A stretch of 64,000 nucleotides of DNA from positions 1 to 64,000 of the IMG/VR virus record IMGVR_UViG_3300035665_000001. One strand, given 5' to 3'. Below are positions 1-28,074 of this stretch, one piece after another; the first letter of the stretch is position 1, and each line of letters starts with the position of its first letter. A program made the translations under genes and the position numbers. The notes beneath the pieces were generated by a model. That model saw only the letters and a program-made list of their open reading frames with translations, had not been told where the DNA came from and searched no databases.

Positions 1-136
1 TGTCCTTGTTGTCCTTGTTGTCCTTGTTGTCCTTGTTGTCCTTGTTGTCCTTGTTGTCCTTGTTGTCCTTGTTGTCCTTGTTGTCCTTGTTGTCCTTGTT
101 GTCCTTGTTGTCCTTGTTGTCCTTGTTGTCCTTGTT
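1..136. repeat. Perfect 9-bp tandem repeat (TGTCCTTGT) x15, encoding (GQQ)n on the minus strand
   Basis: Directly visible and continues to the window edge; in frame with the 1106 ORF (GGA CAA CAA). Confidence 0.97.
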
Positions 137-1106
137 TTGGTGGTTCAGCACCTTCACCTGGTTTAGGCATATCATCGCCCATTCCGTCCATCTGATCAGT
201 AACATCTTTTCTATCAGCTGGCGAAAGTTTATTCAATTCTTCAACAACAGCATCATACATATCCATGTAAGTGTTGTATCTGTCATAATTGATATAATCA
301 TTAAACAACCCCATAGGTAATTGAGCATACCCACTTTTAACCAATGTATAGTTGGTAATAAAATCACCAGTATAATTGACTGCATTGCCATCAAGATTAA
401 ATGCTTTCATTAAATAGAAATCACCATTCGCATAATGCATAATTTCATGCAACAATACAAATTCACAATACAAATAGGCATCTGGAATATCACCACCCTG
501 TGATTGATATTTCTTACCATGTTTGAATTTTGGATTAGCTTTTATACCTTTTACAGTAGCAAATTTCATCAAGCTTTCCATAAAAGGTACATAAAATAAC
601 AGATGTGCGTCTGGTGTACAGGCAGCAGTTTTTATACTATCGTATTGTGGTAAAAGTTTATCGGGAGTAAACCATAAAATAGGTTCAATTCTTTTAACCT
701 GAAATGAATTCGACAAAGGATAGAATTCTGGAACTTCATACTTAACAGCGTTGAATACTTTTTGAAAAATTCTTCGATCAAACTTAACATCCGACATAGG
801 TACATCTTTAATAAAATCAAATGCCGTATCTTCATACAAATTATGTATTATGGTTGCGTTTAATAAAGGTGATTTACTAGCAAATTCTAATTTTTCAGCA
901 ACTTTACTTTCCAACATTTCCTGAGCATTAGCTTTGCTAATGCTTTTTGCTTTTGCAAACTCCTCAATAATATGTTGGATATAATCCTCTTTACCAGTAG
1001 TTACAGTAAATTTTGTTTCACCAACAGCATTATATGTATTCGTTAAACCGGCCTCAGTTAAGTATGTTTTAAACATTGAATCGATGTTCTCAAAAAAATC
1101 ATTCAT
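1..1106 (-). CDS. Zincin-like (HExxH) metallopeptidase-domain protein, DUF2201/VWA-partner type, with GQQ repeat; 3' end runs off the window
   Basis: Not in the ORF track because there is no stop in the window. Read by hand from ATG 1106: MNDFFENIDSMFKTYLTEAG...TAACTPDAHLLFYVPF...CEFVLLHEIMHYANGD...VNYTGDFITNYTL...PPKQ(GQQ)n. Lies 3 nt downstream of a MoxR-type AAA gene. Confidence 0.8.
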   Translation of the reverse strand, partial: MNDFFENIDSMFKTYLTEAGLTNTYNAVGETKFTVTTGKEDYIQHIIEEFAKAKSISKANAQEMLESKVAEKLEFASKSPLLNATIIHNLYEDTAFDFIKDVPMSDVKFDRRIFQKVFNAVKYEVPEFYPLSNSFQVKRIEPILWFTPDKLLPQYDSIKTAACTPDAHLLFYVPFMESLMKFATVKGIKANPKFKHGKKYQSQGGDIPDAYLYCEFVLLHEIMHYANGDFYLMKAFNLDGNAVNYTGDFITNYTLVKSGYAQLPMGLFNDYINYDRYNTYMDMYDAVVEELNKLSPADRKDVTDQMDGMGDDMPKPGEGAEPPKQGQQGQQGQQGQQGQQGQQGQQGQQGQQGQQGQQGQQGQQGQQG

Positions 1107-1109: not shown

Positions 1110-3140
1110 TTATCCTCGTTTTAATCCAAATTTAACTAAAATTTCTCTGATTTTTGTAGCAGTAGTATCAAGTTCCTCTGTTATTTTTGCATCCATATAA
1201 TCTTCAAGCAAAATAAGCATCAAATTTTGACTAAGTGCTAATTCATCACATGTGGCTTTTAATGATATATACAAATTACTTAAATATTGATTTGTTCGTT
1301 CTGCTTCCTTAACTTTTCCAGCATATGCAGCTTTATCAGTTAGAATATTCAAAATAACATGAATATATTTCAAGTATTTAACATATAATTCACATGTTTT
1401 AGCCTCTAGCATAGGTACATCATTAACTTCACCCGCAGCATTAACAAATTTTGCAGTTCCACTACTTTTTTGATTTTCTACAATTTTATCAGCAACAAAA
1501 TCCGTAATTTCTTGAACAAATTTTTGTGGTGATGTTAAATTTGCAGTTAAATAATTATCAAAATGTGGTGAATCATATAATTGTTCAGGATCATCATAAT
1601 AAGCGTTAAATATTTCACTAATAGTTTTAACCCCTTCTACTTTGCGTGTTTTAATTCCTTCATACATAACTTTTACAGAATCATTATTACGAATAAATCC
1701 ACCCGTAACATCTAAAAAATTATCAGGCGGTACCTGTTGTTTTTTACATGTAAACGTCAATTTATTACTCCAGGCATCATGAAATTCATTAACCATTGCA
1801 TCAATAAATATATCAAAATCTTCATCAGAGTAACTGGTATCCAAATTAAATTTACCAACTTTTCTTTCATCTGAATTATTCAACGCATTAGTTTCCCAAT
1901 CATCATCATCTTCAATTGATTCCTGTGTTGAAGAAAGTGTCGATTCTAAACCAACAACCGTAAGTCTATTAATGATATTAACATTTGTCATACTTACAAT
2001 ATCAGTTATCTCTCTAGGTGACAGGTATACCACGGTTCTTTCATTTCTTAAATTGAATAATTTTTCTTCTTTCTGAATATCATTTCCACGCCAATCAACA
2101 GTTGTAGATTGATAATGGCTTAATACGGTTTTAATAGCACCTACTGTAGCAGTATTACAATCAAACCCCATTTTCAATTCAAGATCTTTTGGTCTTTCAT
2201 TAGATAGCAAATAGGTTTCTAATGATGCCCAAGATGCTCTCGCAGGAATAATATCAACAACATCGCGAGTATGACTTGTTAATTCACCAACACCAGCATC
2301 ATCAGGATTTAATGCACCAGCAACCATGATTTCCACAGGTAAATCAAATTCTTCATTAAAAGATTTTTCCAATAATAATTTTCTAATTGAATTGAATACC
2401 TGAGCATCAGCTCTAGTTAATTCATCTAATAATAATAAAAATTTATATTTTCCTTGACCTTTTTTTCTTTTTTCTTCTGGAATGACTTCCTCATTTTTAA
2501 GTGTTTCCTGCATTTTTTTCTGAATTAAATCAAGTAATTCAGGTTTAGAAAACGATGTAGTCATTACGGGTAAACCATTACTATCTAATTCAGGAGAATT
2601 ATTTGCATCTTTTGCTTGGTTTGCCGTTGGAATTCCAGTAGTTGATTCACGATGTAATGTTGATACATCAATGTGTATAAAATGTAAATCTAAATTATTG
2701 GCAACTTGCATCATATGTGCAGTATTGTGATGAATAAATCCTTGAGCATCCTGATACAAATGTGTATCCGTAGCAATATTTAAATCATATACTAATTCCT
2801 GTGCACCCGTTAATGTTGATTTTGTAATCTTAACAATTGAACCATCTGCCTTCTCTACAGAATCCCCAATATTAAATTCATTTACAAATTTACAATCCTT
2901 TTTATTATAAGCCAATTTATGTTTTTCAGCAGTTTCAACTTTAGTGCCATCATCAAATTCAATAACGTTAATAACATCTTCCTTTGTCATTAGAAAAGGA
3001 ACAGGTTGATAGTGTCCATTTTCATCCTTTAGTTTAATTGCTGATTTCACATAATATTCTTCATCACAGACAAATTCAACACCTTCTAATCTGGCTACAG
3101 CTTCAAATAATTCTGAAATTTCTACTTTTAATTCCATCAT
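1110..3140 (-). CDS. C-terminal half of split tandem AAA+ (MoxR/AAA_5-like) ATPase: C-intein (aa 1-139) plus C-extein
   Basis: First 139 aa end in VYDLNIATDTHLYQDAQGFIHHN|T (intein blocks F/G). Then Walker B LLLLDELTRAD, sensor VAGALNP and LSPRE. Lacks its own Walker A GK. Confidence 0.9.
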   Translation of the reverse strand: MMELKVEISELFEAVARLEGVEFVCDEEYYVKSAIKLKDENGHYQPVPFLMTKEDVINVIEFDDGTKVETAEKHKLAYNKKDCKFVNEFNIGDSVEKADGSIVKITKSTLTGAQELVYDLNIATDTHLYQDAQGFIHHNTAHMMQVANNLDLHFIHIDVSTLHRESTTGIPTANQAKDANNSPELDSNGLPVMTTSFSKPELLDLIQKKMQETLKNEEVIPEEKRKKGQGKYKFLLLLDELTRADAQVFNSIRKLLLEKSFNEEFDLPVEIMVAGALNPDDAGVGELTSHTRDVVDIIPARASWASLETYLLSNERPKDLELKMGFDCNTATVGAIKTVLSHYQSTTVDWRGNDIQKEEKLFNLRNERTVVYLSPREITDIVSMTNVNIINRLTVVGLESTLSSTQESIEDDDDWETNALNNSDERKVGKFNLDTSYSDEDFDIFIDAMVNEFHDAWSNKLTFTCKKQQVPPDNFLDVTGGFIRNNDSVKVMYEGIKTRKVEGVKTISEIFNAYYDDPEQLYDSPHFDNYLTANLTSPQKFVQEITDFVADKIVENQKSSGTAKFVNAAGEVNDVPMLEAKTCELYVKYLKYIHVILNILTDKAAYAGKVKEAERTNQYLSNLYISLKATCDELALSQNLMLILLEDYMDAKITEELDTTATKIREILVKFGLKRG
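2724..3140 (-). mobile_element. Split intein, C-fragment (139 aa)
   Basis: IEFDDGTKVETAEKHKL (block B-like His), VYDL (block F) and terminal His-Asn followed by Thr(+1) at 2721-2723. Confidence 0.9.
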
Positions 3141-3173
3141 CTTTTCACCTTTTAATATTTAATATTTAATATT

Positions 3174-3181
3174 TATTTATA
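3174..3181 (-). promoter_or_regulatory. T4-type late promoter TATAAATA upstream of the C-intein gene
   Basis: Exact TATAAATA on the minus strand about 35 nt upstream of the start; the genome encodes a gp55-like sigma. Confidence 0.7.
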
Positions 3182-3320
3182 GTATTTTTCCATATTTATT
3201 ATCTATTTTTAAAACCTCAGATATGGAAATTGTAAATATACCAATTTTTCATTTGTTATCCCAACATTAAAGCATTTTCAAAGAAAAGTTTCACACAAAT
3301 CTACTACGAATATAGGTTAC

Positions 3321-3353
3321 AAAAAAAATCCCCAGTTTTTCAACCAGGGATTT
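3321..3353 (-). terminator. Rho-independent terminator between the two halves of the split AAA gene
   Basis: AAAUCCCUGGUU-GAAA-AACUGGGGAUUU followed by a U-run on the minus strand. Confidence 0.75.
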
Positions 3354-3412
3354 AAATTTTTGAATAGTGTTGACTTAACTAAACACTCTCACATTGTTGA
3401 TAAAAACACATA

Positions 3413-5032
3413 CTATTTTAATTTTTCAGCTCTAATTTCTAAAATAGTTTTATATAACACCTCATCGATCTCAACTATAATTTCCTGATTACCTCGTAAA
3501 CATTTACCAATACCAGGTTCTCCAGAGATAATGGGTACATATTTTCTAGCCTCTTTAGCCGTTGATTCGGAATCACCATCCATTTTAATTTTAGTAAGTA
3601 ATTGCTGTTCTAATACATCTCGCCATTCGGTTTGTGGATGTGTACTACCATCAAAATCAATTTTAGATGTTTGTTTTATCAAATCAACCATAATTTTTTT
3701 AATTTTTGGATATAAATCTGATACAGCTCCATTTGTGTAATTTTTAAAATTCAATTCCACATTTGTCATCAATATTGATGCTTCTCTAAAATTTGCAACT
3801 GGTAAATTTGCGTTGATATATAACAGTAATTGTTCCCACCGTCTAGGTGAAGATCTAACCTCAACAGATTTATCATCATAACTTAAATCTTCAGCAGTTA
3901 AATTATCATAGAATGTATTAAACACTTGTGGGTTTAATTTGATACTTGGAAATTCCTTCGATATATTTTTTTCATATTTTTTAAGGAAATAATCAAACCA
4001 TTGTTCTTTATCAGGGGATTTAAATTCCATTTCTACGAAATCATTATTCATAGGAATATCTTCAACACCATCGTCACTCAAATTTGATGCATAAACAATG
4101 AAAACTCCAGGTGGAATTTTATCATTACCAATTTGTCCATTCAAAATATTTCTAAGGATGTTTCTGATTTTCATATTATCATTTCTAAAATATTCATCTA
4201 AAAACAATATACAGTTATATGATTCCCTAACATTTGTGATCAAAGCTTTATTGTTTGTATAACCATCTCTAATTGTTCTATCTTTTTTAAGATTAGTAAT
4301 CAGTTCTTCCGTAGTCAATTTTAAAGATTTCATCGATTTTAATTTGGTGACCAAATTTGATTCCGATTGTACGATTTCAAATTTTTGTGAGGTCAAATCA
4401 TTTAAACCACTACTATCTTGTGATGTAGTAACGACTGCAGAATCAGAGGAAATTTTATCACCAACCATAATCATAAATGGAATATTGATAATGTGTTCCT
4501 CAGTAATATGTGGTGCCTCAATAGTTATTAATGGTAAACCTAATAATTTTGAGAACCCACGAATAAAAGAAGTTTTACCCGTTCCTGGATCACCAGTAAG
4601 CATAATAGAATTTTTTACACCCGATGAAGCTGCCTGTCCGTCCATTAACGACAATAATGTAAAAATTTGTTTATTGAACACGTTGTTATTATTTACATTT
4701 GGAGCTTTAAACATCAGTTCCTTAGAACTTAATGCTTTATCAAGTGAACCACCAGCTTTCACCGAACCACCAGATTCATCGGGAATATATTTTTCAACAA
4801 CACTACCATCCAAATTTAAAAATTTTGCAGATTTTGCCGCCTCTACATATTTTTTCAAAGATGCAGTTTTTGTATCTAAATCTTTTTCAAAATCACCAAT
4901 ATTTTCATCTGTAATTTTTTTATCTTTGTGGTTTAACACAGCATTAATCAGAGCATCAAATGTTACATTTGTTCTAGATGTAATCTTATCGGAAAGTTTT
5001 GCTTCCGTAATTAACGAATATGATAATTTCAT
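3413..5032 (-). CDS. N-terminal half of split tandem AAA+ ATPase: complete AAA module 1, Walker A of module 2, and N-intein
   Basis: GDPGTGKTS, LFLDEYFR and RSSPRRWE, then a second P-loop ISGEPGIGK followed directly by CLRGNQEI... and a stop 29 aa later. Confidence 0.9.
   Translation of the reverse strand: MKLSYSLITEAKLSDKITSRTNVTFDALINAVLNHKDKKITDENIGDFEKDLDTKTASLKKYVEAAKSAKFLNLDGSVVEKYIPDESGGSVKAGGSLDKALSSKELMFKAPNVNNNNVFNKQIFTLLSLMDGQAASSGVKNSIMLTGDPGTGKTSFIRGFSKLLGLPLITIEAPHITEEHIINIPFMIMVGDKISSDSAVVTTSQDSSGLNDLTSQKFEIVQSESNLVTKLKSMKSLKLTTEELITNLKKDRTIRDGYTNNKALITNVRESYNCILFLDEYFRNDNMKIRNILRNILNGQIGNDKIPPGVFIVYASNLSDDGVEDIPMNNDFVEMEFKSPDKEQWFDYFLKKYEKNISKEFPSIKLNPQVFNTFYDNLTAEDLSYDDKSVEVRSSPRRWEQLLLYINANLPVANFREASILMTNVELNFKNYTNGAVSDLYPKIKKIMVDLIKQTSKIDFDGSTHPQTEWRDVLEQQLLTKIKMDGDSESTAKEARKYVPIISGEPGIGKCLRGNQEIIVEIDEVLYKTILEIRAEKLK
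3416..3502 (-). mobile_element. Split intein, N-fragment (29 aa)
   Basis: CLRGNQEIIV matches intein block A (C1-L-x-G-x-x-x-I) and sits at the GK|T insertion point of a P-loop. Confidence 0.85.
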
Positions 5033-5035: not shown

Positions 5036-5428
5036 CTACTCCCAATTCATAATTTTTTTAAATTCATCTGGTGTATCTACCAGAGTTTTCATCATTTCAG
5101 CATATCTATAAATATATCCAGTTTCAAGATAATTAACACATGGAATAACATATCTTTTTCCCGTATCTGGATCAACGATACCGCCATACATTCCAATGAT
5201 TATTTGAGTTCTGTCTTTACCTGTTGTATCTATTGTAGCCACAGATGCTCGTACTTTTGCTAAATTTTCTTCAGAAATATCAAATTTTGTATCGGTATTA
5301 CTTTGGTTACTAGTTGCAACTCCATAAGATGTTGCAACATCTTCAAAAATCTTATTTGATATTTTATAAGAAGATTTAGTTTGAATTTTAGTGGAAGTTT
5401 GTTTTAACATATCAGCCAACTTACTCAT
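5036..5428 (-). CDS. Hypothetical protein, first gene of the AAA/peptidase late operon
   Basis: ORF with AGGAG SD and TATAAATA at 5470-5477; 3 nt from the AAA gene. Confidence 0.75.
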   Translation of the reverse strand: MSKLADMLKQTSTKIQTKSSYKISNKIFEDVATSYGVATSNQSNTDTKFDISEENLAKVRASVATIDTTGKDRTQIIIGMYGGIVDPDTGKRYVIPCVNYLETGYIYRYAEMMKTLVDTPDEFKKIMNWE

Positions 5429-5521
5429 TTTAACTCCTTCAATATATTATTTTTAATTATAATTTTCTATATTTATATCTTTTTTTTAAAAAAGCCATCA
5501 CTTATATCACATTAATTATTC

Positions 5522-8500
5522 TTAAACGTTTTTCTCCAAATAGTCCAACCAAAATTGAATAAGAAAGAAGTCATCATATTCGGCAATAGTTTTCGATTCA
5601 ACATACTGAATATAACTACTAATACAGACAATATCATCCTCAGATAAACATCTACCAAATGTTTCTTTCTCTAACGAAACTATATCAGAAATAAAAGTGG
5701 TATACGGTTTATCAGATTCAACTTTTTTAATCTCATAACCATAATGTAGTTCTAACTTTTTGTTAAGTAAAAATAAATCCATATCAATTTCATTATGCCA
5801 TTCATTAGTGGATAAATTTTGTTTTAATCTGTAATAAGTATCAGTCATAACAACACGGGTATCATCTGATAAAATTTGATAATTAACTATCAACTTTATT
5901 TTAAACAATAAGTTACGAAGATTTACAACCAATTTAATTAACATTTGACCATATTTTAATTTTTCATCAACATAACCTGTGACATCAAACAATTTTATCT
6001 CTTTCAATCTATCTTTAAAATGTTTAACATCCAATTGATTATAAGCATACGTAGCCGTCAATATTTCAAAAACAGTTTGTTGATCTTTATACAATTCAAT
6101 AAGCACACTTATATCAACGATATTCTGTTTAAAATCATATGCATGAACATCATTCATATATTCTGAAAAAGTCTTAGTCCCATTCAAATGGTTTTTATAC
6201 GCATTTAAAGTTGGGGTTATATCCATAAGCGGTAATTCAAAATTAATATCAAATGATTTTAATAAATTTTTGTTCAACGATGTTAATGCATACCGCTTAG
6301 ATTTTATATTATCCAACTCATAAAACAAATAGAAATTTTTATTTTCTGCTTCGAGGGTTTTTATTTCTGACATAACCAATTCATAGGATTCAACATCTAA
6401 ACCATCTAATACACCATACAACAAATTTATTCGTTCTAACCTAGTTATCAACATATTAAACATTTCCCGAACATTAGCTTTAAATACTAATGTAGGTACA
6501 GCCAAATTAGTAATCTCGGGTCTAAATTCATCTCGATCATATTGCCCCAATGAGGTATTCACAAAATAGCGAATATCAACATTATAAGTATATTTTCCTA
6601 AACCATTGCCAGATTCTGCACCTGTAACAACAGATGCAACAATATTTTTTATTTCGATAATACAATATCGATTTTTATTATTACGCAAAACCAATTTATC
6701 TCCAATAGTTACATTTATTTTTGTAAATGGAGTAGTATATTGTGCAGCATTATTAATATCATAAACACTTTTAACCGAACTTGGAACTTTCGTCATAAAA
6801 GTTATAAATTTACTGCCCGTTATATCCACAGTAGTATTACCAGATATAGGTACCGACAACCTAAAATCAAACAAAAATTCAGATGCTGGATCGGGATATG
6901 CAAATTTTGGATCAAATATTGTCGTATTATCAAACTCATGTCCCGGAAAACCAACACCATTATATCCAACAAAAACATATCCTAGTCTGTCAGCTAATAA
7001 TGTAGTATCCACTGTAGAAAAAGTAACAGCCCCTTTATCCAACATATCCTTTAACGCACCAGATAGATATAGAGGTCTAGTTACCAAAATTCCACTTTCT
7101 GGGTCAGCATATGTCATTTTTGGTACATCTGGGTTTAATTCTAATGGTGCGTAGTGAACATCTCCCATCTTTACAATTTGCGAATTTTTAGGTCCATCCA
7201 AATTAAAAGTTATATGACGTACAAATGCTTCACCAGTGGAGTAAGTAATTTCACATCTAACATCATATGTTCCAGCATCATAAAATGTATGTGCTACCTC
7301 ATTACCATCAAGAACCAATGTTTCTACAAACCATTTATATACTGCTTGTATTTCATTTCCGATAGCGTCAACAGTAGTTTCCATTTTTGCTTTTAATTCG
7401 ACAGTAAATGGGACATTACCAGTATATGAAATAGAATCGGTGTAATCTACTTTATCGGGAACTATAATATTATTATTGATGATAATATCAGTCCATTGCT
7501 TTCTATGTTTTTCAATCAACATATTTTTTTTATTTTCTAATTTTACAACTTCAACACAATTCTTAAATTTTCCAATAAGTTCCACAAAATTATAAAAATC
7601 ACATTTGATACTTTCATTATAATACTCAATATTACTAATAGTTTCGGTTGATAATTTAACGTTGTATTTAGTGTCCACCGAATACTCAACAATCATTTTT
7701 GTAATTTCTGATAATACCTGACTTTGTGTTAAGATTAACGCAGATATTCTACCTTTTTGACTAAACTTTACAACATTATCTTTATTTTTTAAATAAAATG
7801 GGTGAAGAATTAAAATACTGTGGTCCAATTTCTCATAGTCGTCCGTAACTCTCAAAATATTATGAAACCATCGAATGTAATTTATTCGCATCAACTGATT
7901 ATCAAAATATAATTTTTTTAAATTTTTTTCATTCAATAAAAATGCCTTTTCATTAGGTCTAGTTGAAATTATAAACTCATAAAGTATATCCAACTCGGCA
8001 AACAATTCACTTCTAACAACTTTATAAGTTTCATCATCAAATAAATCTGTTAAAATATCTACCGATTCAGAAAAACCGGTAGAAACTTTATCATGGGTTA
8101 TTTCATCCAAATATAATTTATCGATATTACCAATTTTAGTAAATATAGAATCAACCGAATCACTAAATTTTTCAAGTGCGTATAAAATATTAAAATCAAT
8201 TATATTTTCATTGTAAAAAGCGTTATATTCATTTAAAAATTGAATGTAACTTCCTTTATTATATAAATCGGTCAAAACATATGAAAACGCTTTAATTGGG
8301 GTATATATTTTAGTATCAATATATTCATTAAAACCAAAGAATACATTTTTCTTTGCAATAACTAATATAATTTCAACCTTGCTGACGTGCGATTTAAAAT
8401 CAATCAATTTATTCCGACACGATATTTTATTTTCATCGATACCCAAAAGTATATCATCTAGACGCTTACTTTTCAAATCTTCAAGATCAGCAGTTAATTT

Positions 8501-9952
8501 TTTTAAAAATAAAGTATAATCACGTTCTATCGATTCTGCGTATGTTGGTGGGGACAACTTATATGATGCAGTGAAAAATGTTAACGCTGCAGTTTTTAAC
8601 AATTCCTGAACTTTTACAACCTTTTGAACAAACGTATCAAATTCAAAATTATTAAGATGGTATGTTTCCTGCGTCAACAAATTATTATATCGAACAACCC
8701 CAAATTTATAATCGTTTCGTAAATCATCAATAGTAGAATCACCATAATTATCTATATCCAATTTTGAATATCGAAATATATTTGATGTCATCAAATTATA
8801 ATAATATTCCTTAACACTCAACAAAAACAGTTCAGTTTGATAAAATTCAAATGATAAGGTTACTGATTTGCCTGATTCGGAATATTTTTGGGTATAAACA
8901 ATTGGCTTTTTAACAACTTTAGTCATTTCAATTATATCCGAAACAATCTCCTTTAATGTCATATCAGTAATAATATAATCACAATCAACATTTATTTTAC
9001 CATCTTCAATCAATGTAATGTATGCTGAAAATCTATCAAGCATTTTATTGTATTCCGACTCAGTTTTATAATCAACATACATTTGATGTGATGCAATATC
9101 AGAAATAAATAATTTAACACGATTTGAAATAGATTCAAACGTATTTACTAAATTAGTAAACCTATAAACTCCTGATGAAACTATATTATTTTCATATGAT
9201 AATAAATTGTTTTTTATTTTTTCTACAATATCAAAATATTCGAAATTGGTTTGTTCAGGAGTTATCGCTATTGATTGTGATTTAACTTTATCAAATACGT
9301 CGGTATATTCATAAATTTTATTTTCAATCATTTTTTCGGTTGATACCATACTATGTAACTCAACTTTATTTTTATTGAGATACATAGTGTACAACCCATA
9401 CATATAATTGTAAACATCAGTAATGAACGTGCTCGATACATCGAAAATCTTTTTAGTTGGAACAGTTACTCGAAGAATATCATCAACATCATATGGATTA
9501 TTTGAAAAATAATAATATGGAGCAACTGTGTTATCACTATAAATTCTAGCATGTGTTAATACGTTTTGAATTTCATCAACCTCAACTTTTATCAACGGAG
9601 AGACAACAAGCATTTGTTCAAAACGATATAATGAATTAGTGAATGTTACTTTAGTATGAAGAATCTCTAATTCATATAAGTATGATCTAACTATTGCAGA
9701 TTCGATTTTATATTTTTCAAAAGTTACATTTAATGATTGTAATACTTTATCTATTTCACTATTTAATTCAGCAGTTACATCTATTTGTTTCAATACAAGT
9801 TCCAAATTGAATTTAAGAACATTATATTCATCAACAATTTTTTTATAATGAGTAATTTCAGTAGGTTGATCAATAAATTCATAAGTATTATGTGCTGATA
9901 GATTAAAATCCATAACAGCAACATATAATGAATTAAATTTAGTTCTAAACAT
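5522..9952 (-). CDS. Large helical/coiled-coil protein with a central PKD (Ig-like) domain
   Basis: 1476 aa. YTGNVPFTVEL...YKWF...HTFYDAGTYDVRCEITY fits the PKD pattern (~7200-7430). Confidence 0.7.
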   Translation of the reverse strand: MFRTKFNSLYVAVMDFNLSAHNTYEFIDQPTEITHYKKIVDEYNVLKFNLELVLKQIDVTAELNSEIDKVLQSLNVTFEKYKIESAIVRSYLYELEILHTKVTFTNSLYRFEQMLVVSPLIKVEVDEIQNVLTHARIYSDNTVAPYYYFSNNPYDVDDILRVTVPTKKIFDVSSTFITDVYNYMYGLYTMYLNKNKVELHSMVSTEKMIENKIYEYTDVFDKVKSQSIAITPEQTNFEYFDIVEKIKNNLLSYENNIVSSGVYRFTNLVNTFESISNRVKLFISDIASHQMYVDYKTESEYNKMLDRFSAYITLIEDGKINVDCDYIITDMTLKEIVSDIIEMTKVVKKPIVYTQKYSESGKSVTLSFEFYQTELFLLSVKEYYYNLMTSNIFRYSKLDIDNYGDSTIDDLRNDYKFGVVRYNNLLTQETYHLNNFEFDTFVQKVVKVQELLKTAALTFFTASYKLSPPTYAESIERDYTLFLKKLTADLEDLKSKRLDDILLGIDENKISCRNKLIDFKSHVSKVEIILVIAKKNVFFGFNEYIDTKIYTPIKAFSYVLTDLYNKGSYIQFLNEYNAFYNENIIDFNILYALEKFSDSVDSIFTKIGNIDKLYLDEITHDKVSTGFSESVDILTDLFDDETYKVVRSELFAELDILYEFIISTRPNEKAFLLNEKNLKKLYFDNQLMRINYIRWFHNILRVTDDYEKLDHSILILHPFYLKNKDNVVKFSQKGRISALILTQSQVLSEITKMIVEYSVDTKYNVKLSTETISNIEYYNESIKCDFYNFVELIGKFKNCVEVVKLENKKNMLIEKHRKQWTDIIINNNIIVPDKVDYTDSISYTGNVPFTVELKAKMETTVDAIGNEIQAVYKWFVETLVLDGNEVAHTFYDAGTYDVRCEITYSTGEAFVRHITFNLDGPKNSQIVKMGDVHYAPLELNPDVPKMTYADPESGILVTRPLYLSGALKDMLDKGAVTFSTVDTTLLADRLGYVFVGYNGVGFPGHEFDNTTIFDPKFAYPDPASEFLFDFRLSVPISGNTTVDITGSKFITFMTKVPSSVKSVYDINNAAQYTTPFTKINVTIGDKLVLRNNKNRYCIIEIKNIVASVVTGAESGNGLGKYTYNVDIRYFVNTSLGQYDRDEFRPEITNLAVPTLVFKANVREMFNMLITRLERINLLYGVLDGLDVESYELVMSEIKTLEAENKNFYLFYELDNIKSKRYALTSLNKNLLKSFDINFELPLMDITPTLNAYKNHLNGTKTFSEYMNDVHAYDFKQNIVDISVLIELYKDQQTVFEILTATYAYNQLDVKHFKDRLKEIKLFDVTGYVDEKLKYGQMLIKLVVNLRNLLFKIKLIVNYQILSDDTRVVMTDTYYRLKQNLSTNEWHNEIDMDLFLLNKKLELHYGYEIKKVESDKPYTTFISDIVSLEKETFGRCLSEDDIVCISSYIQYVESKTIAEYDDFFLIQFWLDYLEKNV

Positions 9953-12137
9953 ATTTTTTCTCCATATCTAACCATACCATATCTATTTTTTCCTGTTTTT
10001 TAATAAATTCTGCATTTCTTTTAAATTCCATATTTTTATTATGTGTGAATGCAACTATATTACTAAGTATGTTATTAAATGTTGTTATAACATCATCAAA
10101 ATTTTCCTGTCCACTTGAAATGGTAAATTTATGAGTAATAGTATAATCAAACAAATCAGAAACAACACTAATATCTTGATTTATATCAAACGCTATAGTA
10201 ACAACAGTTTTGAATATATCTTTAACATTTGTGAGTTTATTATCAATATCAAGAATCAAAGTTTCACTATATTGCTTATTCAATATATGACTGTGTATCA
10301 TTCCATATAGTAATTTTGTTTCAATAAGTAAATAGCGATTATACATTTCCAATCTACTAATATCAAATATCTTATCTGTAAATTCTCGATCCCACTCTTT
10401 TACCAAGTGTGTTTGAAGCATTGTCAATAATGATTTATAATACGACAACAACTTATTTCTATCATCTACCGAATACCATTCAACATCACATTCGTAATCT
10501 ACAAATTCCTGAAAATGAGTGTTTAATGTACCAACAAAATTTCCACGCAGTAAATTCACATATCCCATATCAGTAGAAGCATCAGGAATATATTTTTTAA
10601 AGAATGGTAATCGATTATCAAAATAATCCTTATACCGCAAAATATATGCAGTGATAGTATCATCCAAATCAATGATGGAGGCGGTTAACTTATTCAACTC
10701 AATTTCTAGAACCTTATTATCAATTTCATGTGCTTCCTTTAGTGTCATCAATTCATTATATTTTTTATCCAAATCATTTTTTTCATTGGTATAAAAATTT
10801 ATTTTTGCCAATACAGCACTGTTATCAACATTTGCATTGATGAAATTTTTATCAATTTCATTTATCGCTACATTTAATTGTCTATTAAGTTCAACACCTA
10901 ACTTGGAATAAATTTCAAATTCAGCAACTTTCTCCCAATAAGTTTCAGTTGCATATTTTTTAGCTACTATATCATACGTTTGCTGTAATTCATCTAACAT
11001 CGTATCAAAGGCATCAACTATATGTTGATCGATTTTACCTAAATGCAGATTAGTGTAAAGGTATTTTAATTTCTCTAAGGTTATCTCTCTATACTTAAAA
11101 TATTTTTTCTCATCATCGCTAGTTACTACCAGAAGCAACACTTTTTTCTTATCGATAATAAGTTGATCAACCTCAGCAATGTATTTTTTTAGTTCATCTA
11201 CTTTTTTACTGGTCATTTTAAATAAAAATTCATTATTATTAAAAGTTTTATGTGATTGTAACCATAATAATGAATACTCTTTTACTGCTAACTCAATCGA
11301 AAAATTGTATTTCTTTGTTAATGTTTCATACCATTTATCAACTAATAAATCATAGACCTGGGTTGATGAAGTTTCTTCTAAAGTTTTTTTACCAAACATA
11401 ATACTTGAACCGTATGTCCAGTATGTTTCATATTCATCTTTAAACTCTTCAACTAAATCCTGATAAAATACCTCCGTTCTTTTTTCCCATTCCTCATACA
11501 GCATTCGCAAAGTAACAGAAAAAAATGTATGTGGTAATAATTCAGTTTTTATTTTAGATAACTCAACAACATGATCTTGAATATTCTTCTCATAATGAAC
11601 AAAATCATCAGTCACTTTTACCATAATATCGTGTAATGTATTGATTTCTTGTGTAGTATCAATAACATAATTGTCATTATAAAAATAATTGTTTTCAACC
11701 ACCTGTGATTGATAATACCTAATAAAATCGGTTATTTTTTGAATATCATCAGTTAAAATACTCAAATTATGACTAATAAACTCATTATCATCCATAGACA
11801 ATTTACGTTTCAATATAATTTTTTCTTTGTTTGAAACCAACGAATTTTTATTAATGATTAGTTCATTATACTGTTGTAGTATTGGTAGCCCATAAGTATC
11901 AAAATCAATGATAAATTTTGACAAATCATACAATGTCGTATGGAGCTCACTGTCTAAACGTTGTGTAGAATTTTTATGGTCGTTAATCGACATCACAGTT
12001 GCCTCATCCAACCCATAATTTTTAATGAAATCTTCTGATAAATTTTGAAAATAACTGTCTATTTTTGAGTTATATGGATACCCACTTATAAATTCAAGAT
12101 TTTGTCGTACATCAATTCTAACCATTGTATTCCCCAA
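9945..12137 (-). CDS. Hypothetical coiled-coil protein
   Basis: 730-aa ORF overlapping the start of the next gene; heptad-rich with no recognised motif. Confidence 0.75.
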   Translation of the reverse strand: MGNTMVRIDVRQNLEFISGYPYNSKIDSYFQNLSEDFIKNYGLDEATVMSINDHKNSTQRLDSELHTTLYDLSKFIIDFDTYGLPILQQYNELIINKNSLVSNKEKIILKRKLSMDDNEFISHNLSILTDDIQKITDFIRYYQSQVVENNYFYNDNYVIDTTQEINTLHDIMVKVTDDFVHYEKNIQDHVVELSKIKTELLPHTFFSVTLRMLYEEWEKRTEVFYQDLVEEFKDEYETYWTYGSSIMFGKKTLEETSSTQVYDLLVDKWYETLTKKYNFSIELAVKEYSLLWLQSHKTFNNNEFLFKMTSKKVDELKKYIAEVDQLIIDKKKVLLLVVTSDDEKKYFKYREITLEKLKYLYTNLHLGKIDQHIVDAFDTMLDELQQTYDIVAKKYATETYWEKVAEFEIYSKLGVELNRQLNVAINEIDKNFINANVDNSAVLAKINFYTNEKNDLDKKYNELMTLKEAHEIDNKVLEIELNKLTASIIDLDDTITAYILRYKDYFDNRLPFFKKYIPDASTDMGYVNLLRGNFVGTLNTHFQEFVDYECDVEWYSVDDRNKLLSYYKSLLTMLQTHLVKEWDREFTDKIFDISRLEMYNRYLLIETKLLYGMIHSHILNKQYSETLILDIDNKLTNVKDIFKTVVTIAFDINQDISVVSDLFDYTITHKFTISSGQENFDDVITTFNNILSNIVAFTHNKNMEFKRNAEFIKKQEKIDMVWLDMEKKYV

Positions 12138-14307: not shown

Positions 14308-14309
14308 AA

Positions 14310-14786: not shown

Positions 14787-14797
14787 AGTTTGAAATT

Positions 14798-14821: not shown

Positions 14822-14834
14822 ATAAAATTAAAAT

Positions 14835-16124
14835 TTAGTGTTCAATTTCCGCCTCAAGAAAATCATCATCTGGCATAGATGCTGAATAGGTTTGATTATC
14901 CTGATTTTGCGATGCCTCATGCAACTTCGTACCAATTTCCTGGAACTTATTCATCAAAGTTTCATGAATTTTTTTAAGATCGGAAACAGTTGATGTTTCG
15001 TTACCTACCAATTCCTTTGCAGAATCAATAACAGATTTTAATTCGGCTGTATCTAAGGCTTCATTTTCCTTAATAAACTTTTCTGCCTGATTAATCGTAC
15101 CATCAATTGAGTTTGTAATACTAATTTTTTCAAGCTTATCTTTATTTCGAATGTTTGATTCCTCCGCATCTGCAACCATTTTAGAAATTTCATCATCAGT
15201 TAACGTACCACTACCAGTAATAGTGATTGAATTAGCTTTCCCCGTAGATAAATCTTTTGCAGAAACAGAAAGAATACCATTGGTATCAATATCCATCTTA
15301 ATTTCAATTTGAGGAACACCTCGTGGTGCAGGAGCAATTCCACCCAATTCAAATGTTCCTAACTGCTTATTATCAGAAAATAACTGTGCCTCTCCAGTAG
15401 CAATCATGACAGATACCGCAGGTTGGTTATCAGCCGCCGTTGAAAACACCTGTTTTGCAGATGTAGGAATAGTTGTACCTTTTTCAACCAGTTTAGTCAT
15501 CACACCACCCATAGTTTCAATTCCTAAAGATAATGGTGTGACGTCCAATAAAACAATATCATCAACATCACCTGCTAATACACCTCCTTGAATAGCAGCA
15601 CCTGCAGCAACCACTTCATCGGGGTTGACAGTATTATTCAAGATTTTACCATTAAAAAACTCAGAAACTTTTGTTTTTACTAATGGAATACGAGTTGAAC
15701 CACCAACCATTACAACTTCCTGGATTTTTGATTTATCTAACCCAGCCTGTTTCAAAGCATCTTTGATATGGGTGAGAATTTCATCAACCATTGGTTCAAT
15801 CATAGAATCTAATTTAGCTCTAGTCACTTTCGAAATCAAATGTTTTGGACCTGAAGCATCAGCAGTAATGTATGGTAAATTAATTTCAGTTTCCATAGTT
15901 GCAGAAAGTTCTTTTTTTGCTTTTTCAGCAGAATCCATTAAACGTTGCATAGCAAGTGCATCATTAGATAAATCCATACCAGTATCAGATTTAAATTGAG
16001 AAATTAAGTATCCCATAATCGCCTGGTCTACGTCCTTACCACCCATAAAAGCATTACCATCGGTTGATAAAACTTCAAATGTTCCTTCTTCACCAACATC
16101 AATAACTGAAATATCTAATGTTCC
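14835..16124 (-). CDS. dnaK: DnaK (Hsp70), exon 2
   Basis: GTLDISV...VVMVGGSTRIP...NPDEVVAAGAAIQG...LLDVTPLSLGIET...PAPRGVPQIE. 429 aa after the splice junction. Confidence 0.95.
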   Translation of the reverse strand, partial: GTLDISVIDVGEEGTFEVLSTDGNAFMGGKDVDQAIMGYLISQFKSDTGMDLSNDALAMQRLMDSAEKAKKELSATMETEINLPYITADASGPKHLISKVTRAKLDSMIEPMVDEILTHIKDALKQAGLDKSKIQEVVMVGGSTRIPLVKTKVSEFFNGKILNNTVNPDEVVAAGAAIQGGVLAGDVDDIVLLDVTPLSLGIETMGGVMTKLVEKGTTIPTSAKQVFSTAADNQPAVSVMIATGEAQLFSDNKQLGTFELGGIAPAPRGVPQIEIKMDIDTNGILSVSAKDLSTGKANSITITGSGTLTDDEISKMVADAEESNIRNKDKLEKISITNSIDGTINQAEKFIKENEALDTAELKSVIDSAKELVGNETSTVSDLKKIHETLMNKFQEIGTKLHEASQNQDNQTYSASMPDDDFLEAEIEH

Positions 16125-16457
16125 CGATTTGTTATCGTAGGGGAATTTAACCCCCACTTCTAATAGTTTCCTATTAGTCCAGACTATATCTTAGTTTGTT
16201 AATTTTCAAACCTTCCGCACTCTTGGAGTTTTACCTTCTTCAGCATTATCTGGTCAGAATCCATACTCTAGTCGTTGAACCTTGAACTTATTTCTAAGTC
16301 CCTTGGCTGCTGATTTTCCAATCTTAACCCTTTTCAAACCATTATCCCTATCTTCACAGATTTGATTGTGGTGTGTTAAGCTCTAAGGACGTCCCAGCAA
16401 TTCACGGAATTTTTTTAAACTGGAGGCTTGTTATGCTGCTACTGCAGCCAATAGTTC
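16125..16457 (-). ncRNA. Group I self-splicing intron (333 nt, no ORF) in dnaK
   Basis: Exon ends in U (GGT GGT|) and intron ends in G (..AAATCG|GGA ACA). Core elements in order: GAATTGCTGGGA (P), AATCAGCAGCC (Q), GTTCAACGACTAGA (R), AAGATATAGTCT (S). Removal restores DFGG-GTLD. Confidence 0.92.
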
Positions 16458-17048
16458 ACCACCAAAATCCACAACACAAATGGTTTCATCTTTTTTCTTA
16501 TCAATACCATACGCTAATGCTGCTGCAGTAGGTTCGTTAATAATACGTAACACATTAAGACCGGCAATTTTACCAGCATCCTGTGTTGCTTTACGTTGTG
16601 AATCATTAAAGTAAGCAGGAACAGTAATAACTGCATCAGTAACAGTTGTACCTAAATATGCCTCAGCATCCACTTTTAATTTTGAAAGAATCTTAGCAGA
16701 AATCTCTTGAGGCGTGTAAGTCTTACCATCAATCTCAACAGCGGCAGCACCATTTCTATCTACAATGTTGTATTGTACTTTAGTTTTTGCTTCCTCAGTT
16801 TTTTTCTCATTACTCATTAAACCCATAATACGTTTAACAGCTTCAATTGTTTTATGGGGGTTTGTTACTGCCTGACGTTTTGCAGACTCACCAACCAAAA
16901 CTTCATCACCTGCAAAAGCCACAATTGATGGAGTAGTATTATTACCCTCACGATTTGGGATAATTTTTGACGTTCCATTTTCATAAATGGAAATACAACT
17001 ATTAGTGGTTCCTAAATCTAAACCAAGCACAATTTGTTTTTTACTCAT
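16458..17048 (-). CDS. dnaK: DnaK (Hsp70), exon 1
   Basis: [54 protein letters not shown]. 197 aa; spliced product 626 aa. Confidence 0.95.
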
Positions 17049-24687: not shown

Positions 24688-25290
24688 CTATTGTTCCCCC
24701 GAAATCATACTAAAAACTCTATCTGGTCGTTCATCAACAATAATATTTTTTATTTTATTAACTACTTGAGCATCATCATGTATTGCGTTAACAAGGGTAT
24801 AAAGTAAATCTCGATTATTATCTTTTTCTACTAATAAAGTTGCATTTTTCAGTTTTGCCTGATAATAACATGGAGTAATAATAACACCATTAACCATAGT
24901 AATTATAGGTGCTATTTCATCAAACGCAGTTGGGTTTATTTCAATAGTAAAACCATATGGATGTTCTAAAATAACCCAGGCAGTTGATGTTCCATGACGC
25001 AGACTACGAAATTTCCAACCACTTCGATATTTTTCTTCAATAATAAAAGTTCGAATTTTTGATGAAACACGCCAATTTCCACGCCAATTTTCAAATGACA
25101 TAGGTAAACTACCATTCTTATTCAACCGCACCATAAAACCAACATCACCATGAACTTTTAATAAAAACTCATCATCATTTAATTTCTTAATTTTTTTAAT
25201 ATCATCAATATCAATTTCTCTAATATCATCAACTTCTGTTATATCAATCATACTACACCATTTTTTAATTGTTGAATTTTGAAAAATCAT
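24688..25290 (-). CDS. Hypothetical phage protein
   Basis: ORF overlapping the upstream helicase fragment; start uncertain. Confidence 0.7.
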   Translation of the reverse strand: MIFQNSTIKKWCSMIDITEVDDIREIDIDDIKKIKKLNDDEFLLKVHGDVGFMVRLNKNGSLPMSFENWRGNWRVSSKIRTFIIEEKYRSGWKFRSLRHGTSTAWVILEHPYGFTIEINPTAFDEIAPIITMVNGVIITPCYYQAKLKNATLLVEKDNNRDLLYTLVNAIHDDAQVVNKIKNIIVDERPDRVFSMISGEQ

Positions 25291-26410
25291 CTAAATCGAT
25301 GAAACCTTTTTTTATACCATTATCAATAATACGCTCTAATTTACCTTTATAAAACAATTCACTCATTTCAGACTGTTTTAAATCCCATATAACTAAGTTT
25401 TTCTTTGGTCTAGTAACAGCAGTATAAACTACACGTTTTTCCTCATCAATATTATAAAACCCATCCTCTACCTGTTCAAGTATCGAAAAATCATAAATAA
25501 AAATCACGTTATCCCACTGCAACCCTTTAGCCTTATGCACCGTCATCAATTGTACCTTGTGTGCAGATTTTTCTTCTAAGAATTGTGCCTCGAATAACAT
25601 TTCTTCTAACGCCTCCATCCAATTACTTAATCCCTCTCGATTTTTAACCTCATTTAAATCTCTATAAAATCTTTTCAAAGAATGTTCTACTTGTTCAACA
25701 GTTTTAGTAGGAGATTCAATCATTTTCGCAATTTCTGGAATCGCCAAATGAAAACTACCAAATTCCAAATGTTTGTAAATACTACATATTTCTGGTATTT
25801 GTTTAACATCAGAAAACATATTACTAATATCCTGCATACTAGTACATTTGCTTATACCAGAAGCAATTTTCAAAGGGATACCACCCTTAGCCATCTTAAT
25901 AATATCAACAACAATAGATTTATTATATCCATGACTAACTATCGACAGCATATTCATCAGAAATTTTACTTCAGCTCTTTTAAGAATATCAAATTCTGTG
26001 TGTAGATAATATGGAATTTGTAACTTACCCAATATTTTTGCGAGTTGTTTTATAGCCGCATTAGTTCTAGCCAATATACATGTTTGATGTAGTGGTTTAT
26101 CAAGCAACTTTAATTCATCAATAAATTCCTCAGAATCGTAAATATTGTAAACATCACCGGCATGTGTATTGGCGGCTTTTGAAATTTTAGATTCGTCCAA
26201 TGAGTCATTATTAAAATCAATAGTATCAGCAATTTCATTTGCAAGAGAAACAATTTCAGGTGATGATCTAAAATTATAACTTAAAATTTCAACGGTTGGA
26301 TTAAAATCATCTATAAACCTACTCATCAGTTTTGGTTGAGAACCCCGAAACCCATATATGCTCTGTTTTACATCACCCATCATTACCAATTTAGCTTTGT
26401 TTGAATTCAT
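25265..26410 (-). CDS. UvrD/PcrA-like SF1 helicase, C-terminal fragment (motifs III-VI)
   Basis: GDVKQSIYGFRGS (III), NFRSSPEI (IV), ILARTN (IVa), MTVHKAKGLQW (V), EEKRVVYTAVTRPK (VI). Own AAGGA SD 9 nt before the ATG. Confidence 0.9.
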   Translation of the reverse strand: MNSNKAKLVMMGDVKQSIYGFRGSQPKLMSRFIDDFNPTVEILSYNFRSSPEIVSLANEIADTIDFNNDSLDESKISKAANTHAGDVYNIYDSEEFIDELKLLDKPLHQTCILARTNAAIKQLAKILGKLQIPYYLHTEFDILKRAEVKFLMNMLSIVSHGYNKSIVVDIIKMAKGGIPLKIASGISKCTSMQDISNMFSDVKQIPEICSIYKHLEFGSFHLAIPEIAKMIESPTKTVEQVEHSLKRFYRDLNEVKNREGLSNWMEALEEMLFEAQFLEEKSAHKVQLMTVHKAKGLQWDNVIFIYDFSILEQVEDGFYNIDEEKRVVYTAVTRPKKNLVIWDLKQSEMSELFYKGKLERIIDNGIKKGFIDLDDFSKFNN

Positions 26411-27368
26411 AATCTAGTTTCCTTTCGATACTTTCATTGTATTTTATTCGTATTAATTTAATATTTTTTTTACTGCAATAATCATCTTTGAGTTTATCGT
26501 TATCCTGGCGATGTTTTAATTTTTGTTGTTTTTCACACTCAGACAAATCTAATTTTTTAGAAAAAGGATAATATTCGAAATGATGAATACCATCAAATTC
26601 AATTATAATATTTTGTTGTGGTAAATAAAAATCATACCTTAATATTGAATACTTAGATTTTCCTCTTAAATCCGAAAATGTTTTTTCTCTTTCAAATTGA
26701 ATATTATTATTCTCCAAATATTCTCGTATTTTGCGTTCACCATGACTCTTGTCAGTAAAACAATTTGGACATCCTAAACTCCCCAAATGATCCCTACCCT
26801 TTCTTTGAAATTGATAACCACATTTCAAGCATTCAATATCAACATCACTATGTTTTCCCAAATAATTCACATACAAAAAAACATCACCAAATATTTTAAC
26901 AGACTCAAGTAAATAATTATCGAATGATATTCTATTTTTTTTGGAAATTTTAGTATTAACACATCGGTCATTTGGACAACCATGTCCAGAAAGATGATTG
27001 CCAGGTATTTGGTAGAATAACGAATTACATTGTAAACACAAAATCCCAATTTTAGTCAAACTGTTAATATAATTTGAGTCAACATACTCATACATATCAC
27101 CATGAACTTTTTTTGCTTTGTTCACAAACTCTCCAAAAGTGTAGGTGTTATGCTTTGCCAACTGTTTATATTGGCATTGTTTGCAACCATGCCCTTTTTG
27201 ATGACTACTATAATTTTGTTCAAAAACTATATTACAAACCTTACAAAAAATTTTAATTTTTCTTAAATTTTTAGTTGAAAACTCATCAGGCACTAATTCA
27301 TAGGAATACTTTAATTTTTGGTCATTGGAAACCTTTTTCAAAAAATCAACTTTCTTCAATATCAACAC
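26391..27368 (-). CDS. Putative homing endonuclease (zinc-ribbon repeats plus C-terminal PD-(D/E)XK/Vsr-like domain) inserted in the helicase gene
   Basis: Repeated CxxC...H..G.GC modules, KKVHGDMYEY, and SHGERKIREYL...LRYDFYLP..NIIIEFDGIHH. Confidence 0.8.
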   Translation of the reverse strand: MLILKKVDFLKKVSNDQKLKYSYELVPDEFSTKNLRKIKIFCKVCNIVFEQNYSSHQKGHGCKQCQYKQLAKHNTYTFGEFVNKAKKVHGDMYEYVDSNYINSLTKIGILCLQCNSLFYQIPGNHLSGHGCPNDRCVNTKISKKNRISFDNYLLESVKIFGDVFLYVNYLGKHSDVDIECLKCGYQFQRKGRDHLGSLGCPNCFTDKSHGERKIREYLENNNIQFEREKTFSDLRGKSKYSILRYDFYLPQQNIIIEFDGIHHFEYYPFSKKLDLSECEKQQKLKHRQDNDKLKDDYCSKKNIKLIRIKYNESIERKLDYEFKQS

Positions 27369-28074
27369 CAGTAATATTTCTTAAACTAATAAGAAAATGA
27401 TATTGGGCATAATTAAGATCTTGAGCCTCATCAGTAATAATGTATTTTACATTCTGAAAAGTAGCACGAACCCTATCAAAACAATCCGCATCATCCAAAA
27501 CAAAATTAGCCAAGTGAATCATAAAATCAAACATAACCAAATTATTTTTAATCAGATATTCTAGCAATCTAAGAGTTTCATCATCAGTAAAATCCTCCAA
27601 CTGTAAATCTTGCGATACATTACTAATAAATTGTTTGTTAAATGTACCTTTTTCCTTCTTTTTGCCATATTTTTTAAATTCTTCTTCCATAAATGCTTCA
27701 GGAAATTCATGCACTATTGTTGGAACAACGGTATAACCAATATCCTGAAAATAAGGTTTTATCAATTCATTCCAGCAAAAAGAATGAATAGTCGAAATGT
27801 ATTTGAAATCATACTTTTGCTTTTCAAAAAATTTATTAACCCTTTCTTTTAGCTCGTTAGCAGCTTTTCGAGTAAAAGAAAATGCAACAATCTCATTAGG
27901 TTTAACACCTTGATTGATTTTATCACTAATAAATTCTACACATGAAGTTGTTTTTCCTGATCCCGCAGCAGCTAAACATAGTACGTGTTTATCCCTTGTA
28001 GAAGCAAATTGTTGTTGTTCATCAGTTAAATTACTTTTCTTACTCACTGGGTTGCTCCGAATTAATTGTTTCAA
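27346..28074 (-). CDS. UvrD/PcrA-like SF1 helicase, N-terminal fragment (Q motif, I, Ia, II)
   Basis: LTDEQQ, AAAGSGKTT, FSFTRKAANELKER, STIHSFC, ITDEAQDLN..QY. Confidence 0.9.
   Translation of the reverse strand: MKQLIRSNPVSKKSNLTDEQQQFASTRDKHVLCLAAAGSGKTTSCVEFISDKINQGVKPNEIVAFSFTRKAANELKERVNKFFEKQKYDFKYISTIHSFCWNELIKPYFQDIGYTVVPTIVHEFPEAFMEEEFKKYGKKKEKGTFNKQFISNVSQDLQLEDFTDDETLRLLEYLIKNNLVMFDFMIHLANFVLDDADCFDRVRATFQNVKYIITDEAQDLNYAQYHFLISLRNITGVDIEES

Follow-up and report, generated by a model that had tools for sequence, protein, structure and literature searches.

The question raised by the locus analysed here is how a phage could obtain a complete tandem AAA+ ATPase from a gene that is cut within the second P-loop. 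The locus lies on the minus strand of a 64,000-nucleotide (nt) stretch, hereafter the window, which forms the end (positions 1 to 64,000) of the IMG/VR record UViG_3300035665_000001, an uncultivated jumbo phage of 306,333 bp with 30% GC. Two open reading frames (ORFs) carry the pieces of the ATPase: ORF A (5032..3413, 539 aa) ends with GEPGIGK, a 29-aa tail initiated by Cys (CLRGNQ...) and the stop codon, and ORF B (3140..1110, 676 aa) begins with 139 residues ending in VYDLNIATDTHLYQDAQGFIHHN, after which Thr-Ala-His follows. A preliminary description of this DNA had taken the two inserted pieces to be the fragments of an atypically split intein. Based on the analysis given below, we consider it very probable that the feature is a natural atypically split class-1 intein residing in the second Walker A motif of a tandem AAA+ protein, for which trans-splicing, i.e., the splicing of the two products into one protein, is predicted.

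Read in the direction of the genes, the arrangement begins with the N-extein (3503..5032, 510 aa), which comprises the N-terminal region, the complete AAA module 1 with its Walker A GDPGTGKT at 4571-4594 and its Walker B residues DE at 4193-4198, and, at the end, GEPGIGK (3503-3523), with which the second Walker A opens. It is followed by the N-terminal intein fragment, IntN (3416..3502, 29 aa, with the Cys1 codon at 3500-3502), by the stop codon of ORF A (3413..3415) and by a non-coding spacer of 272 nt (3141..3412) that extends to the start of ORF B. The C-terminal intein fragment, IntC (2724..3140, 139 aa), opens ORF B, and the C-extein (1110..2723, 537 aa plus the stop) has as its first codon the Walker A Thr, here called Thr+1 (2721-2723), and carries the rest of AAA module 2, with the Walker B residues DE at 2421-2426, and the C-terminal region. 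The ORF coordinates, the pieces of 29 and 139 aa and the spacer length given in the preliminary description are exact; the sole correction is that ORF B possibly starts at its second ATG (3137), which is the start in the database gene calls and in relatives and which gives an IntC of 138 aa.

That the two ORFs encode the halves of one protein is seen from homologues in which the protein is uninterrupted. Among 50,697 deposited phage genomes the sole homologue is gp86 of the Ralstonia jumbo phage RsoM2USA (MG752970, 840 aa, annotated as 'hypothetical protein'), which is a tandem AAA+ protein having both Walker A motifs. ORF A aligns with gp86 residues 29-384, the alignment ending exactly with K510, corresponding to K384, and the homology of ORF B to gp86 begins at T140, corresponding to T385, with zero residues missing or extra at the junction. 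Since the homology is carried by ORF A up to the Lys and by ORF B from the Thr onward, the junction is not a matter of chance. In comparison with the window protein, gp86 lacks the interruption and is less extended at both ends, with an identity of 44% in the N half and 30% in the C half. A large protein collection holds more than 20 further uninterrupted homologues, of 1045-1117 aa and with 46-62% identity, and in all six of those inspected (1055-1117 aa) GEPGIGKTAH is read across the junction. The joined exteins, with 510 + 537 = 1047 aa, fall inside this range of lengths. Moreover, both ORFs match PHROG 1297, a phage ATPase family, ORF A from profile position 22 and ORF B over positions 40-157 from its residue 141, just past the P-loop. 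The claim that joining the exteins restores the Walker A GEPGIGKT in a tandem AAA+ protein of about 1047 aa is thus borne out by the intein-free homologues.

The element that interrupts the motif has the residues of an intein. Cys511 of ORF A, i.e., Cys1, directly follows K510, and a Cys is present there in the IntN tails of all relatives. In an alignment of 25 sequences with identities down to 26%, His74, Asp119, His127, His137, His138 and Asn139 are invariant; His74 belongs to block B, Asp119 (in VYDL) and His127 (in HLYQ) constitute block F, and His137-His138-Asn139, followed by T140, constitute block G. An exhaustive search with IntC over 1.84 billion representatives gave 133 clusters (50% identity) at E <= 1e-3, and across this family the +1 residue is Thr or Ser, bar a few fringe hits, with the Walker A context continuing after it. 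This is consistent with the earlier assignment of Cys1/Thr+1; the intein blocks A, B, F and G are recognised, the catalytic residues being both present and conserved in relatives. It is also noted that the intein and the exteins are conserved to a comparable degree, with 60-66% identity to relatives for the former and 47-64% for the latter. A search of the six-frame translation of the 64-kb window with a hidden Markov model of the IntC family found no second IntC copy.

At the level of the fold the same assignment is reached. A single-sequence phmmer search with IntC against the PDB chains returned no intein, only chance matches to ankyrin repeats, so that a fold search was needed. AlphaFold2 modelling was applied to IntC alone, with 24 homologues and with IntN outside the model, the fragments being tested apart, and gave a mean confidence (pLDDT) of 95.5. 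In the Foldseek search of the PDB with this model, the 49 matches at E <= 1e-3 consist entirely of inteins and bacterial intein-like (BIL) Hint domains, and they include the atypically split inteins VidaL (6vgv), Cat (6dsl) and PolB16 OarG (8cpo). The proposed Hint fold is thereby confirmed for the long piece. In addition, the family profile searched against the PDB, where the matches were dominated by Clp exteins, hit the gp41-1 intein (6qaz, E 6e-4) as the sole intein, and among 109 split family members eight match the Pfam intein profile PF14890 (Intein_splicing) at <=1e-5, the best at 1e-14, with matches also to PT-HINT, Hint and Hint_2.

Where in this fold the break lies can be deduced from about 15 relatives that are contiguous, having an N-part of 16-36 aa fused in frame with the IntC-homologous region where the window has the stop, the spacer and the start. 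In the model of one of them, P0170 (pLDDT of the intein region 79-94), Cys1 is followed by two strands, an extra helix and a loose loop, which then leads to the strand and the helix that open IntC. In the window IntC model the opening, canonical helix is formed by residues 8-19, and position 8 of the Pfam intein profile aligns with IntC residue 4. Atypical split sites have been classed as S1, after beta2, and S2, after alpha1, with an IntN of about 15-37 aa (PMC13014065). Because of the topology of P0170 and the alignment of Pfam position 8, the split in the window points to an S1-like position, as in VidaL and PolB16, rather than to S2, as in AceL-TerL and GOS-TerL, and would lie inside a family-specific insertion. 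In terms of these models, the part of IntN that belongs to the Hint core looks like about 12 residues (CLRGNQEIIVEI), and the other 17 look like a family-specific helix; that IntN is as long as 29 aa would be due to this helix following the strands. The idea that IntN might complement the acidic start of IntC in charge was set aside after inspection by eye, the net charge of IntN being about zero.

We turn to the spacer, which contains 6-11 stop codons in each frame and no ORF. In the direction of the genes it contains a terminator-like 12-bp hairpin with a T run at 3353..3326 (one found versus 0.1 expected), a sigma70-like site at 3264..3235, the sequence TATAAATA at 3181..3174, which precedes the start of ORF B by 34 nt, and the ribosome-binding site of that ORF, AAGGTGA, at 3151..3145. 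TATAAATA is a T4-type late-promoter motif, of a type mentioned in PMC2677866. Eight of the 17 copies in the window are located 15-60 nt upstream of genes on the same strand (P about 2e-10), with examples at 3174-3181, 5470-5477, 20159-20166, 22108-22115 and 37697-37704 on the minus strand and at 44432-44439, 48025-48032 and 53350-53357 on the plus strand. This placement suggests, as judged from the sequence, that T4-type late promoters operate in this jumbo phage of 30% GC. The copy at 5477..5470 stands before a gene of 130 aa (5036..5477, minus strand) that lies 4 nt upstream of ORF A, and is likely to be the late promoter of the ORF A transcript. Because the motif precedes this gene abutting ORF A as well as ORF B, both halves are probably late and coordinately expressed. 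From the terminator-like hairpin and the late-promoter-like motif, we infer that the two halves would be transcribed separately.

Could the split be unreal, or be bridged at the level of RNA? The former would mean that the stop and the spacer result from an assembly or sequencing error or that they are the marks of a contiguous intein decayed only recently into a pseudogene, and it is true that the record is a metagenome assembly and that the locus is located 1-5 kb from the contig end. However, three samples have each yielded a JGI contig with ORF B; two of these contigs cross the spacer and are 100% identical there, the third (2,213 bp) starting shortly before ORF B. Other assemblies contain six C-halves and four N-halves, 47-66% identical, with the stop and the start at matching positions; nineteen other IMG/VR loci contain family members that are mostly split; and a ribosome-binding site and an ATG of its own are present for ORF B. 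An artefact of assembly, which the preliminary description had named as a possible objection, is thus not supported, and the short-N/long-C split that it described, with 29 aa and 138/139 aa on separate ORFs, recurs in relatives; we regard an error or a recent decay as extremely unlikely. The latter would mean that the spacer is an intron or is crossed by translational bypass, giving a contiguous precursor that splices in cis. It draws on the presence of a group I intron in the dnaK gene of the same phage and on the existence of the contiguous intein relatives. Against it, the sensitive Rfam scan of 2950..3600 gave no intron or other RNA family at E <= 10, while a scan of this type detected the dnaK intron with E 7e-16; the spacer folds no better than its shuffles (z = -1.65); and there are the terminator-like hairpin, the promoter motif, the ribosome-binding site, the ATG and the stops in every frame. 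The spacer as a group I or group II intron or another RNA was therefore rejected, and only a very slight chance is left to joining of the halves at the RNA level. A search by tblastn detected in the spacer no remnant of the ORF that intervenes between the halves in some relatives, and the idea that the spacer is a relic of that ORF was also given up.

The remaining alternative is that the element is a relic that has lost splicing, so that the halves are held together non-covalently or act as separate proteins, with no peptide bond formed between them. There are several points that weigh against a working, separately transcribed split intein, and the first two of them speak for the relic. In block B, which reads ETAEKH, the usual Thr three residues before the His is replaced by Ala, with Ala or Ser in relatives, and the match of the window IntC to PF14890 (E 5.8e-5, 23.4 bits) does not reach the gathering cut-off of 35.8. 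Thr+1 is a comparatively poor nucleophile. As regards the expression, TATAAATA is not over-represented in the window (17 found versus 16.8 expected), its placement alone being non-random, and the promoter and the terminator in the spacer are consensus matches only. It is noted that variation of the block-B Thr occurs in other inteins too. By contrast, Cys1, His74, Asp119, His137, His138, Asn139 and the Thr or Ser at +1 are kept down to about 26% identity, which argues against a relic since a mere docking module would not need such residues, and without splicing the second P-loop would stay severed between its Lys and its Thr. A splicing-dead relic is consequently judged unlikely.

Based on the preferred reading, that of an active split intein, the pathway is expected to be as follows. 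ORF A would give the N-extein carrying the 29-aa IntN, and ORF B would give the 138/139-aa IntC carrying the C-extein. Each probably synthesised late from its own TATAAATA promoter, the two products would associate via IntN and IntC, completing the Hint fold. A thioester would then be formed between Cys1 and Lys510, followed by transfer of the acyl group to the hydroxyl of Thr+1; cyclisation of Asn139 would free the intein, and an O-to-N shift would give the Lys-Thr peptide bond, the product being a 1047-aa protein with its second P-loop GEPGIGKT intact. As the P-loop is cut between Lys and Thr, ATPase module 2 is incomplete before splicing, and with splicing as predicted the cut would place a conserved AAA+/DUF2201 module of jumbo phages under post-translational control, as a switch.

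The preliminary description had presented the element as a single new intein. The host protein is indeed new, as far as the literature discussed below goes, and the element does not stand alone, being part of the family of 133 clusters, with members at the Lys|Thr/Ser position of Walker A. Of the 151 proteins with an IntC that were retrieved, 130 (about 86%) have the domain at the extreme N-terminus, which means that the intein is split. After the GK, the hosts of the family are Clp-like proteins, ClpX, RecA/UvsX, DnaB, SF2 helicases, PhoH, clamp-loader and ABC proteins, and the tandem AAA proteins of large phages. In terms of Pfam, the 109 split members contain AAA_2 (32), ClpB_D2-small (27), AAA_5 (24), ResIII (8), Helicase_C (7), RecA (5) and PhoH (3), and further Terminase_6, DnaB_C, ABC_tran, SNF2 and a clamp-loader domain. 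The Clp-like halves start at ClpA residue 502, directly past the second P-loop.

The genomic context of relatives was seen at 19 further IMG/VR loci, most of which have upstream a Cys-initiated tail of 26-29 aa after G..G.GK. The exceptions are one tail of 13 aa, one of 42 aa, and four loci with none, one of these being contiguous. The upstream IntN tail is located either at 28-113 nt or at 844-1250 nt, in the latter case with an ORF of 320-390 aa, mostly antisense, in between. Five of these intervening ORFs belong to phrog_22677, an unannotated family of PHROGs, with a weak hint of HNH. In the window itself, a 355-aa ORF after the tail-sheath gene (50779-51846, plus strand) is homologous to the phrog_22677 ORFs that intervene in the fractured Clp-like genes of relatives (tblastn E 1e-22 to 1e-26); neither the intervening ORFs of the relatives nor this window homologue matched anything in Pfam or NCBIfam. 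The ORF is a candidate member, by its similarity, of a free-standing mobile endonuclease family. Taken together, the relatives document stages of gene fracturing, namely the contiguous gene, the split gene with an intervening ORF, the split gene without the ORF, and a gene in three pieces.

The three-piece gene is that of the relative L002 (JGI 3300020048 contig, 61,898 bp; 5181-10053), and it is found independently in L003. The tandem ATPase is here encoded in three genes, the first (190 aa) ending with GDPGVGK plus an IntN, the second (521 aa) consisting of an IntC, AAA module 1 and another IntN, and the third (690 aa) consisting of an IntC and AAA module 2. There is therefore one split intein per Walker A, and the two are paralogous, with the IntC pair 61% identical and the IntN pair about 50%. 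The two pairs must be orthogonal, because otherwise the middle piece would circularise. When 131 IntC domains were analysed by maximum likelihood, the intein in the first P-loop of L002 was placed inside the well-supported second-P-loop clade (support 99/97) that also contains the window intein, while the other first-P-loop inteins are located elsewhere in the tree, the deep branches of which are poorly resolved, and the host labels require 18 changes on the tree versus a minimum of 5. The placement and the host-label changes indicate repeated movement of the intein between P-loops. A larger reading can be put forward tentatively, as a possibility that we do not favour strongly, in which these elements form a large clade, not found described, of N-terminally split inteins that home to Walker A and hop between P-loops, with phrog_22677 maybe a new homing endonuclease.

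We next consider the host protein. The preliminary description had spoken of two MoxR-type modules; the two AAA modules are present, and the MoxR label rests on weak matches of AAA_5/AAA_3 type and on the neighbouring DUF2201_N gene. ORF A matches Pfam AAA (34.2 bits) and AAA_5 (26 bits) above the cut-offs, with bpMoxR at E 0.13, and no NCBIfam equivalog was obtained for the ATPase. The uninterrupted relatives have PF07726 and PF07728 in precomputed annotation, and JGI gives the name 'MoxR-like ATPase' to some of them. The downstream gene (3..1106, minus strand), which runs off the end of the window and contig, encodes a putative HExxH metallopeptidase of DUF2201_N (PF13203; 27.4 bits, above the cut-off of 23.2) and is 36% identical (E 1e-60) to gp85 of RsoM2USA. 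Because gp85 adjoins gp86, just as the two genes adjoin in the window, the ATPase/DUF2201_N pair is a conserved two-gene module. DUF2201 is associated with MoxR, and the DUF2201_N partner fits a MoxR-type chaperone pair; from this the ATPase would be a MoxR-like remodeller that works with the adjacent DUF2201_N protein. At the contig end (1-136) a perfect 9-nt tandem repeat of 15 copies encodes the collagen-like GQQ repeat of the DUF2201_N protein, and it is probably this repeat that halted the assembly. On the other side of the locus is located a 1476-aa ORF (5522-9952, minus strand), one of two very large ORFs in the window, the other being of 2552 aa (55749-63407, plus strand); the 1476-aa ORF is without a Pfam match and also adjoins the ATPase locus in L002.

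Two other interrupted genes are present in the window. A full DnaK-GrpE-DnaJ chaperone set (13483-17048, minus strand) comprises a J-domain gene (13483-14307), a GrpE-like gene (14310-14786), GrpE and DnaJ being assigned by sequence only, and an intron-containing dnaK (Hsp70). The group I intron of the latter (16160-16489, minus strand) is located between the ORFs 17048..16431 and 16157..14835 and matches the full-length model RF00028 with 63.8 bits (gathering 50; E 7e-16); the upstream ORF covers positions 1-195 of Pfam HSP70 and the downstream ORF positions 191-597, and the gene is broken within the motif DFGG|GT. The Rfam run over the whole window at gathering thresholds with default filters missed this intron, which the local scan found. 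A UvrD/Rep-like helicase (25265-28074, minus strand) is also divided between two ORFs, with UvrD-helicase positions 1-235 in 28074..27346 and positions 238-270 plus UvrD_C in 26410..25265. It is cut by an inserted ORF of 325 aa (27368..26391) having a treble-clef zinc finger (DUF4379) and a weak match to a PvuRts1I-like nuclease, and it looks like a gene fractured by a free-standing endonuclease, without an intein.

Finally, we compare the element with known systems. Among the closest are VidaL and PolB16 OarG, which, according to PMC13014065 and PMC10189870, are natural atypically split inteins of the S1 type with an IntN of 16 and 15 aa, respectively. They resemble the window element in the short IntN and long IntC, in the separate genes, in the phage-like origin and in the split that we infer after the first two strands. 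VidaL (6vgv) matches the fold of the window IntC with E 4.6e-5 and TM scores of 0.76/0.73, and PolB16 (8cpo) with E 4.7e-4. The Foldseek alignments show about 15-20% identity, and at the level of the single sequence there is no HMMER-detectable similarity to any PDB intein. The window intein has Cys1/Thr+1 whereas PolB16 has Ser1/Ser+1, and its host is an AAA+ ATPase P-loop whereas that of PolB16 is a PolB-type DNA polymerase (PMC10189870).

AceL-TerL, GOS-TerL and the consensus Cat, with an IntN of 25-37 aa and the S2 split (PMC11766414, PMC13014065), are like the window element in the length class of IntN (29 versus 25-37 aa), in an IntC of more than 100 aa and in phage or metagenome origin, and Cat (6dsl) is among the fold matches of the window IntC. 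By contrast, they have terminase hosts, Cys+1 and a split past the canonical helix, which the window element keeps in its IntC. The inteins of AceL-TerL type are at most remote relatives, a terminase-borne intein (P0290) appearing at the fringe of the family search with E 3e-4.

The insertion site itself is a classic one. Inteins between the Walker A Lys and Thr/Ser are described as TerL1-a, DnaB-b, MCM-a and RFC-a (PMC5050341, PMC4760082), and they share with the window element the insertion point GK|T and the Walker A Thr as the +1 nucleophile. As described in these two papers they are contiguous, the former being silent on split inteins, whereas a split near the N-terminus is present in the window element and in about 86% of its family.

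The layout of the locus resembles that of the fractured genes with split inteins in gp41, IMPDH, NrdA, NrdJ and DnaE of Dassa et al. 2009 (PMC2677866), of which Gp41-1, Gp41-8 and NrdJ were later classed as canonically split (PMC13014065). In both cases the gene halves are adjacent and co-oriented in a phage genome and have their own control signals. There is no homing-endonuclease gene between the halves in the window, and the phrog_22677 ORF of the relatives does not belong to a recognised endonuclease family; in terms of that work the window corresponds to the stage at which the endonuclease has been lost, as at the gp41-7 locus (PMC2677866). In the literature covered, which is incomplete so that absence is weak evidence, no split intein was found in MoxR-like or Clp-like AAA+ proteins and no description of the family was found.

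According to the sources above, the natural split inteins with a short IntN are few, being AceL-TerL, GOS-TerL, VidaL and PolB16, to which the engineered consensus Cat is added. A short IntN that can be synthesised is prized for semi-synthetic N-terminal labelling of proteins; the Cys1/Thr+1 pair of the window would leave a Thr scar rather than a Cys one, and the many diverged relatives could be a source of orthogonal split-intein pairs. If the reading of a large clade is true, there would be many natural pairs with a short IntN, including mutually orthogonal ones that coexist in one gene, and the relatives also show the transfer of an intein between P-loops. Compared with the known systems, the kind of element is one already known, an atypically split intein at the classic Walker A site, and what is new is its host protein.

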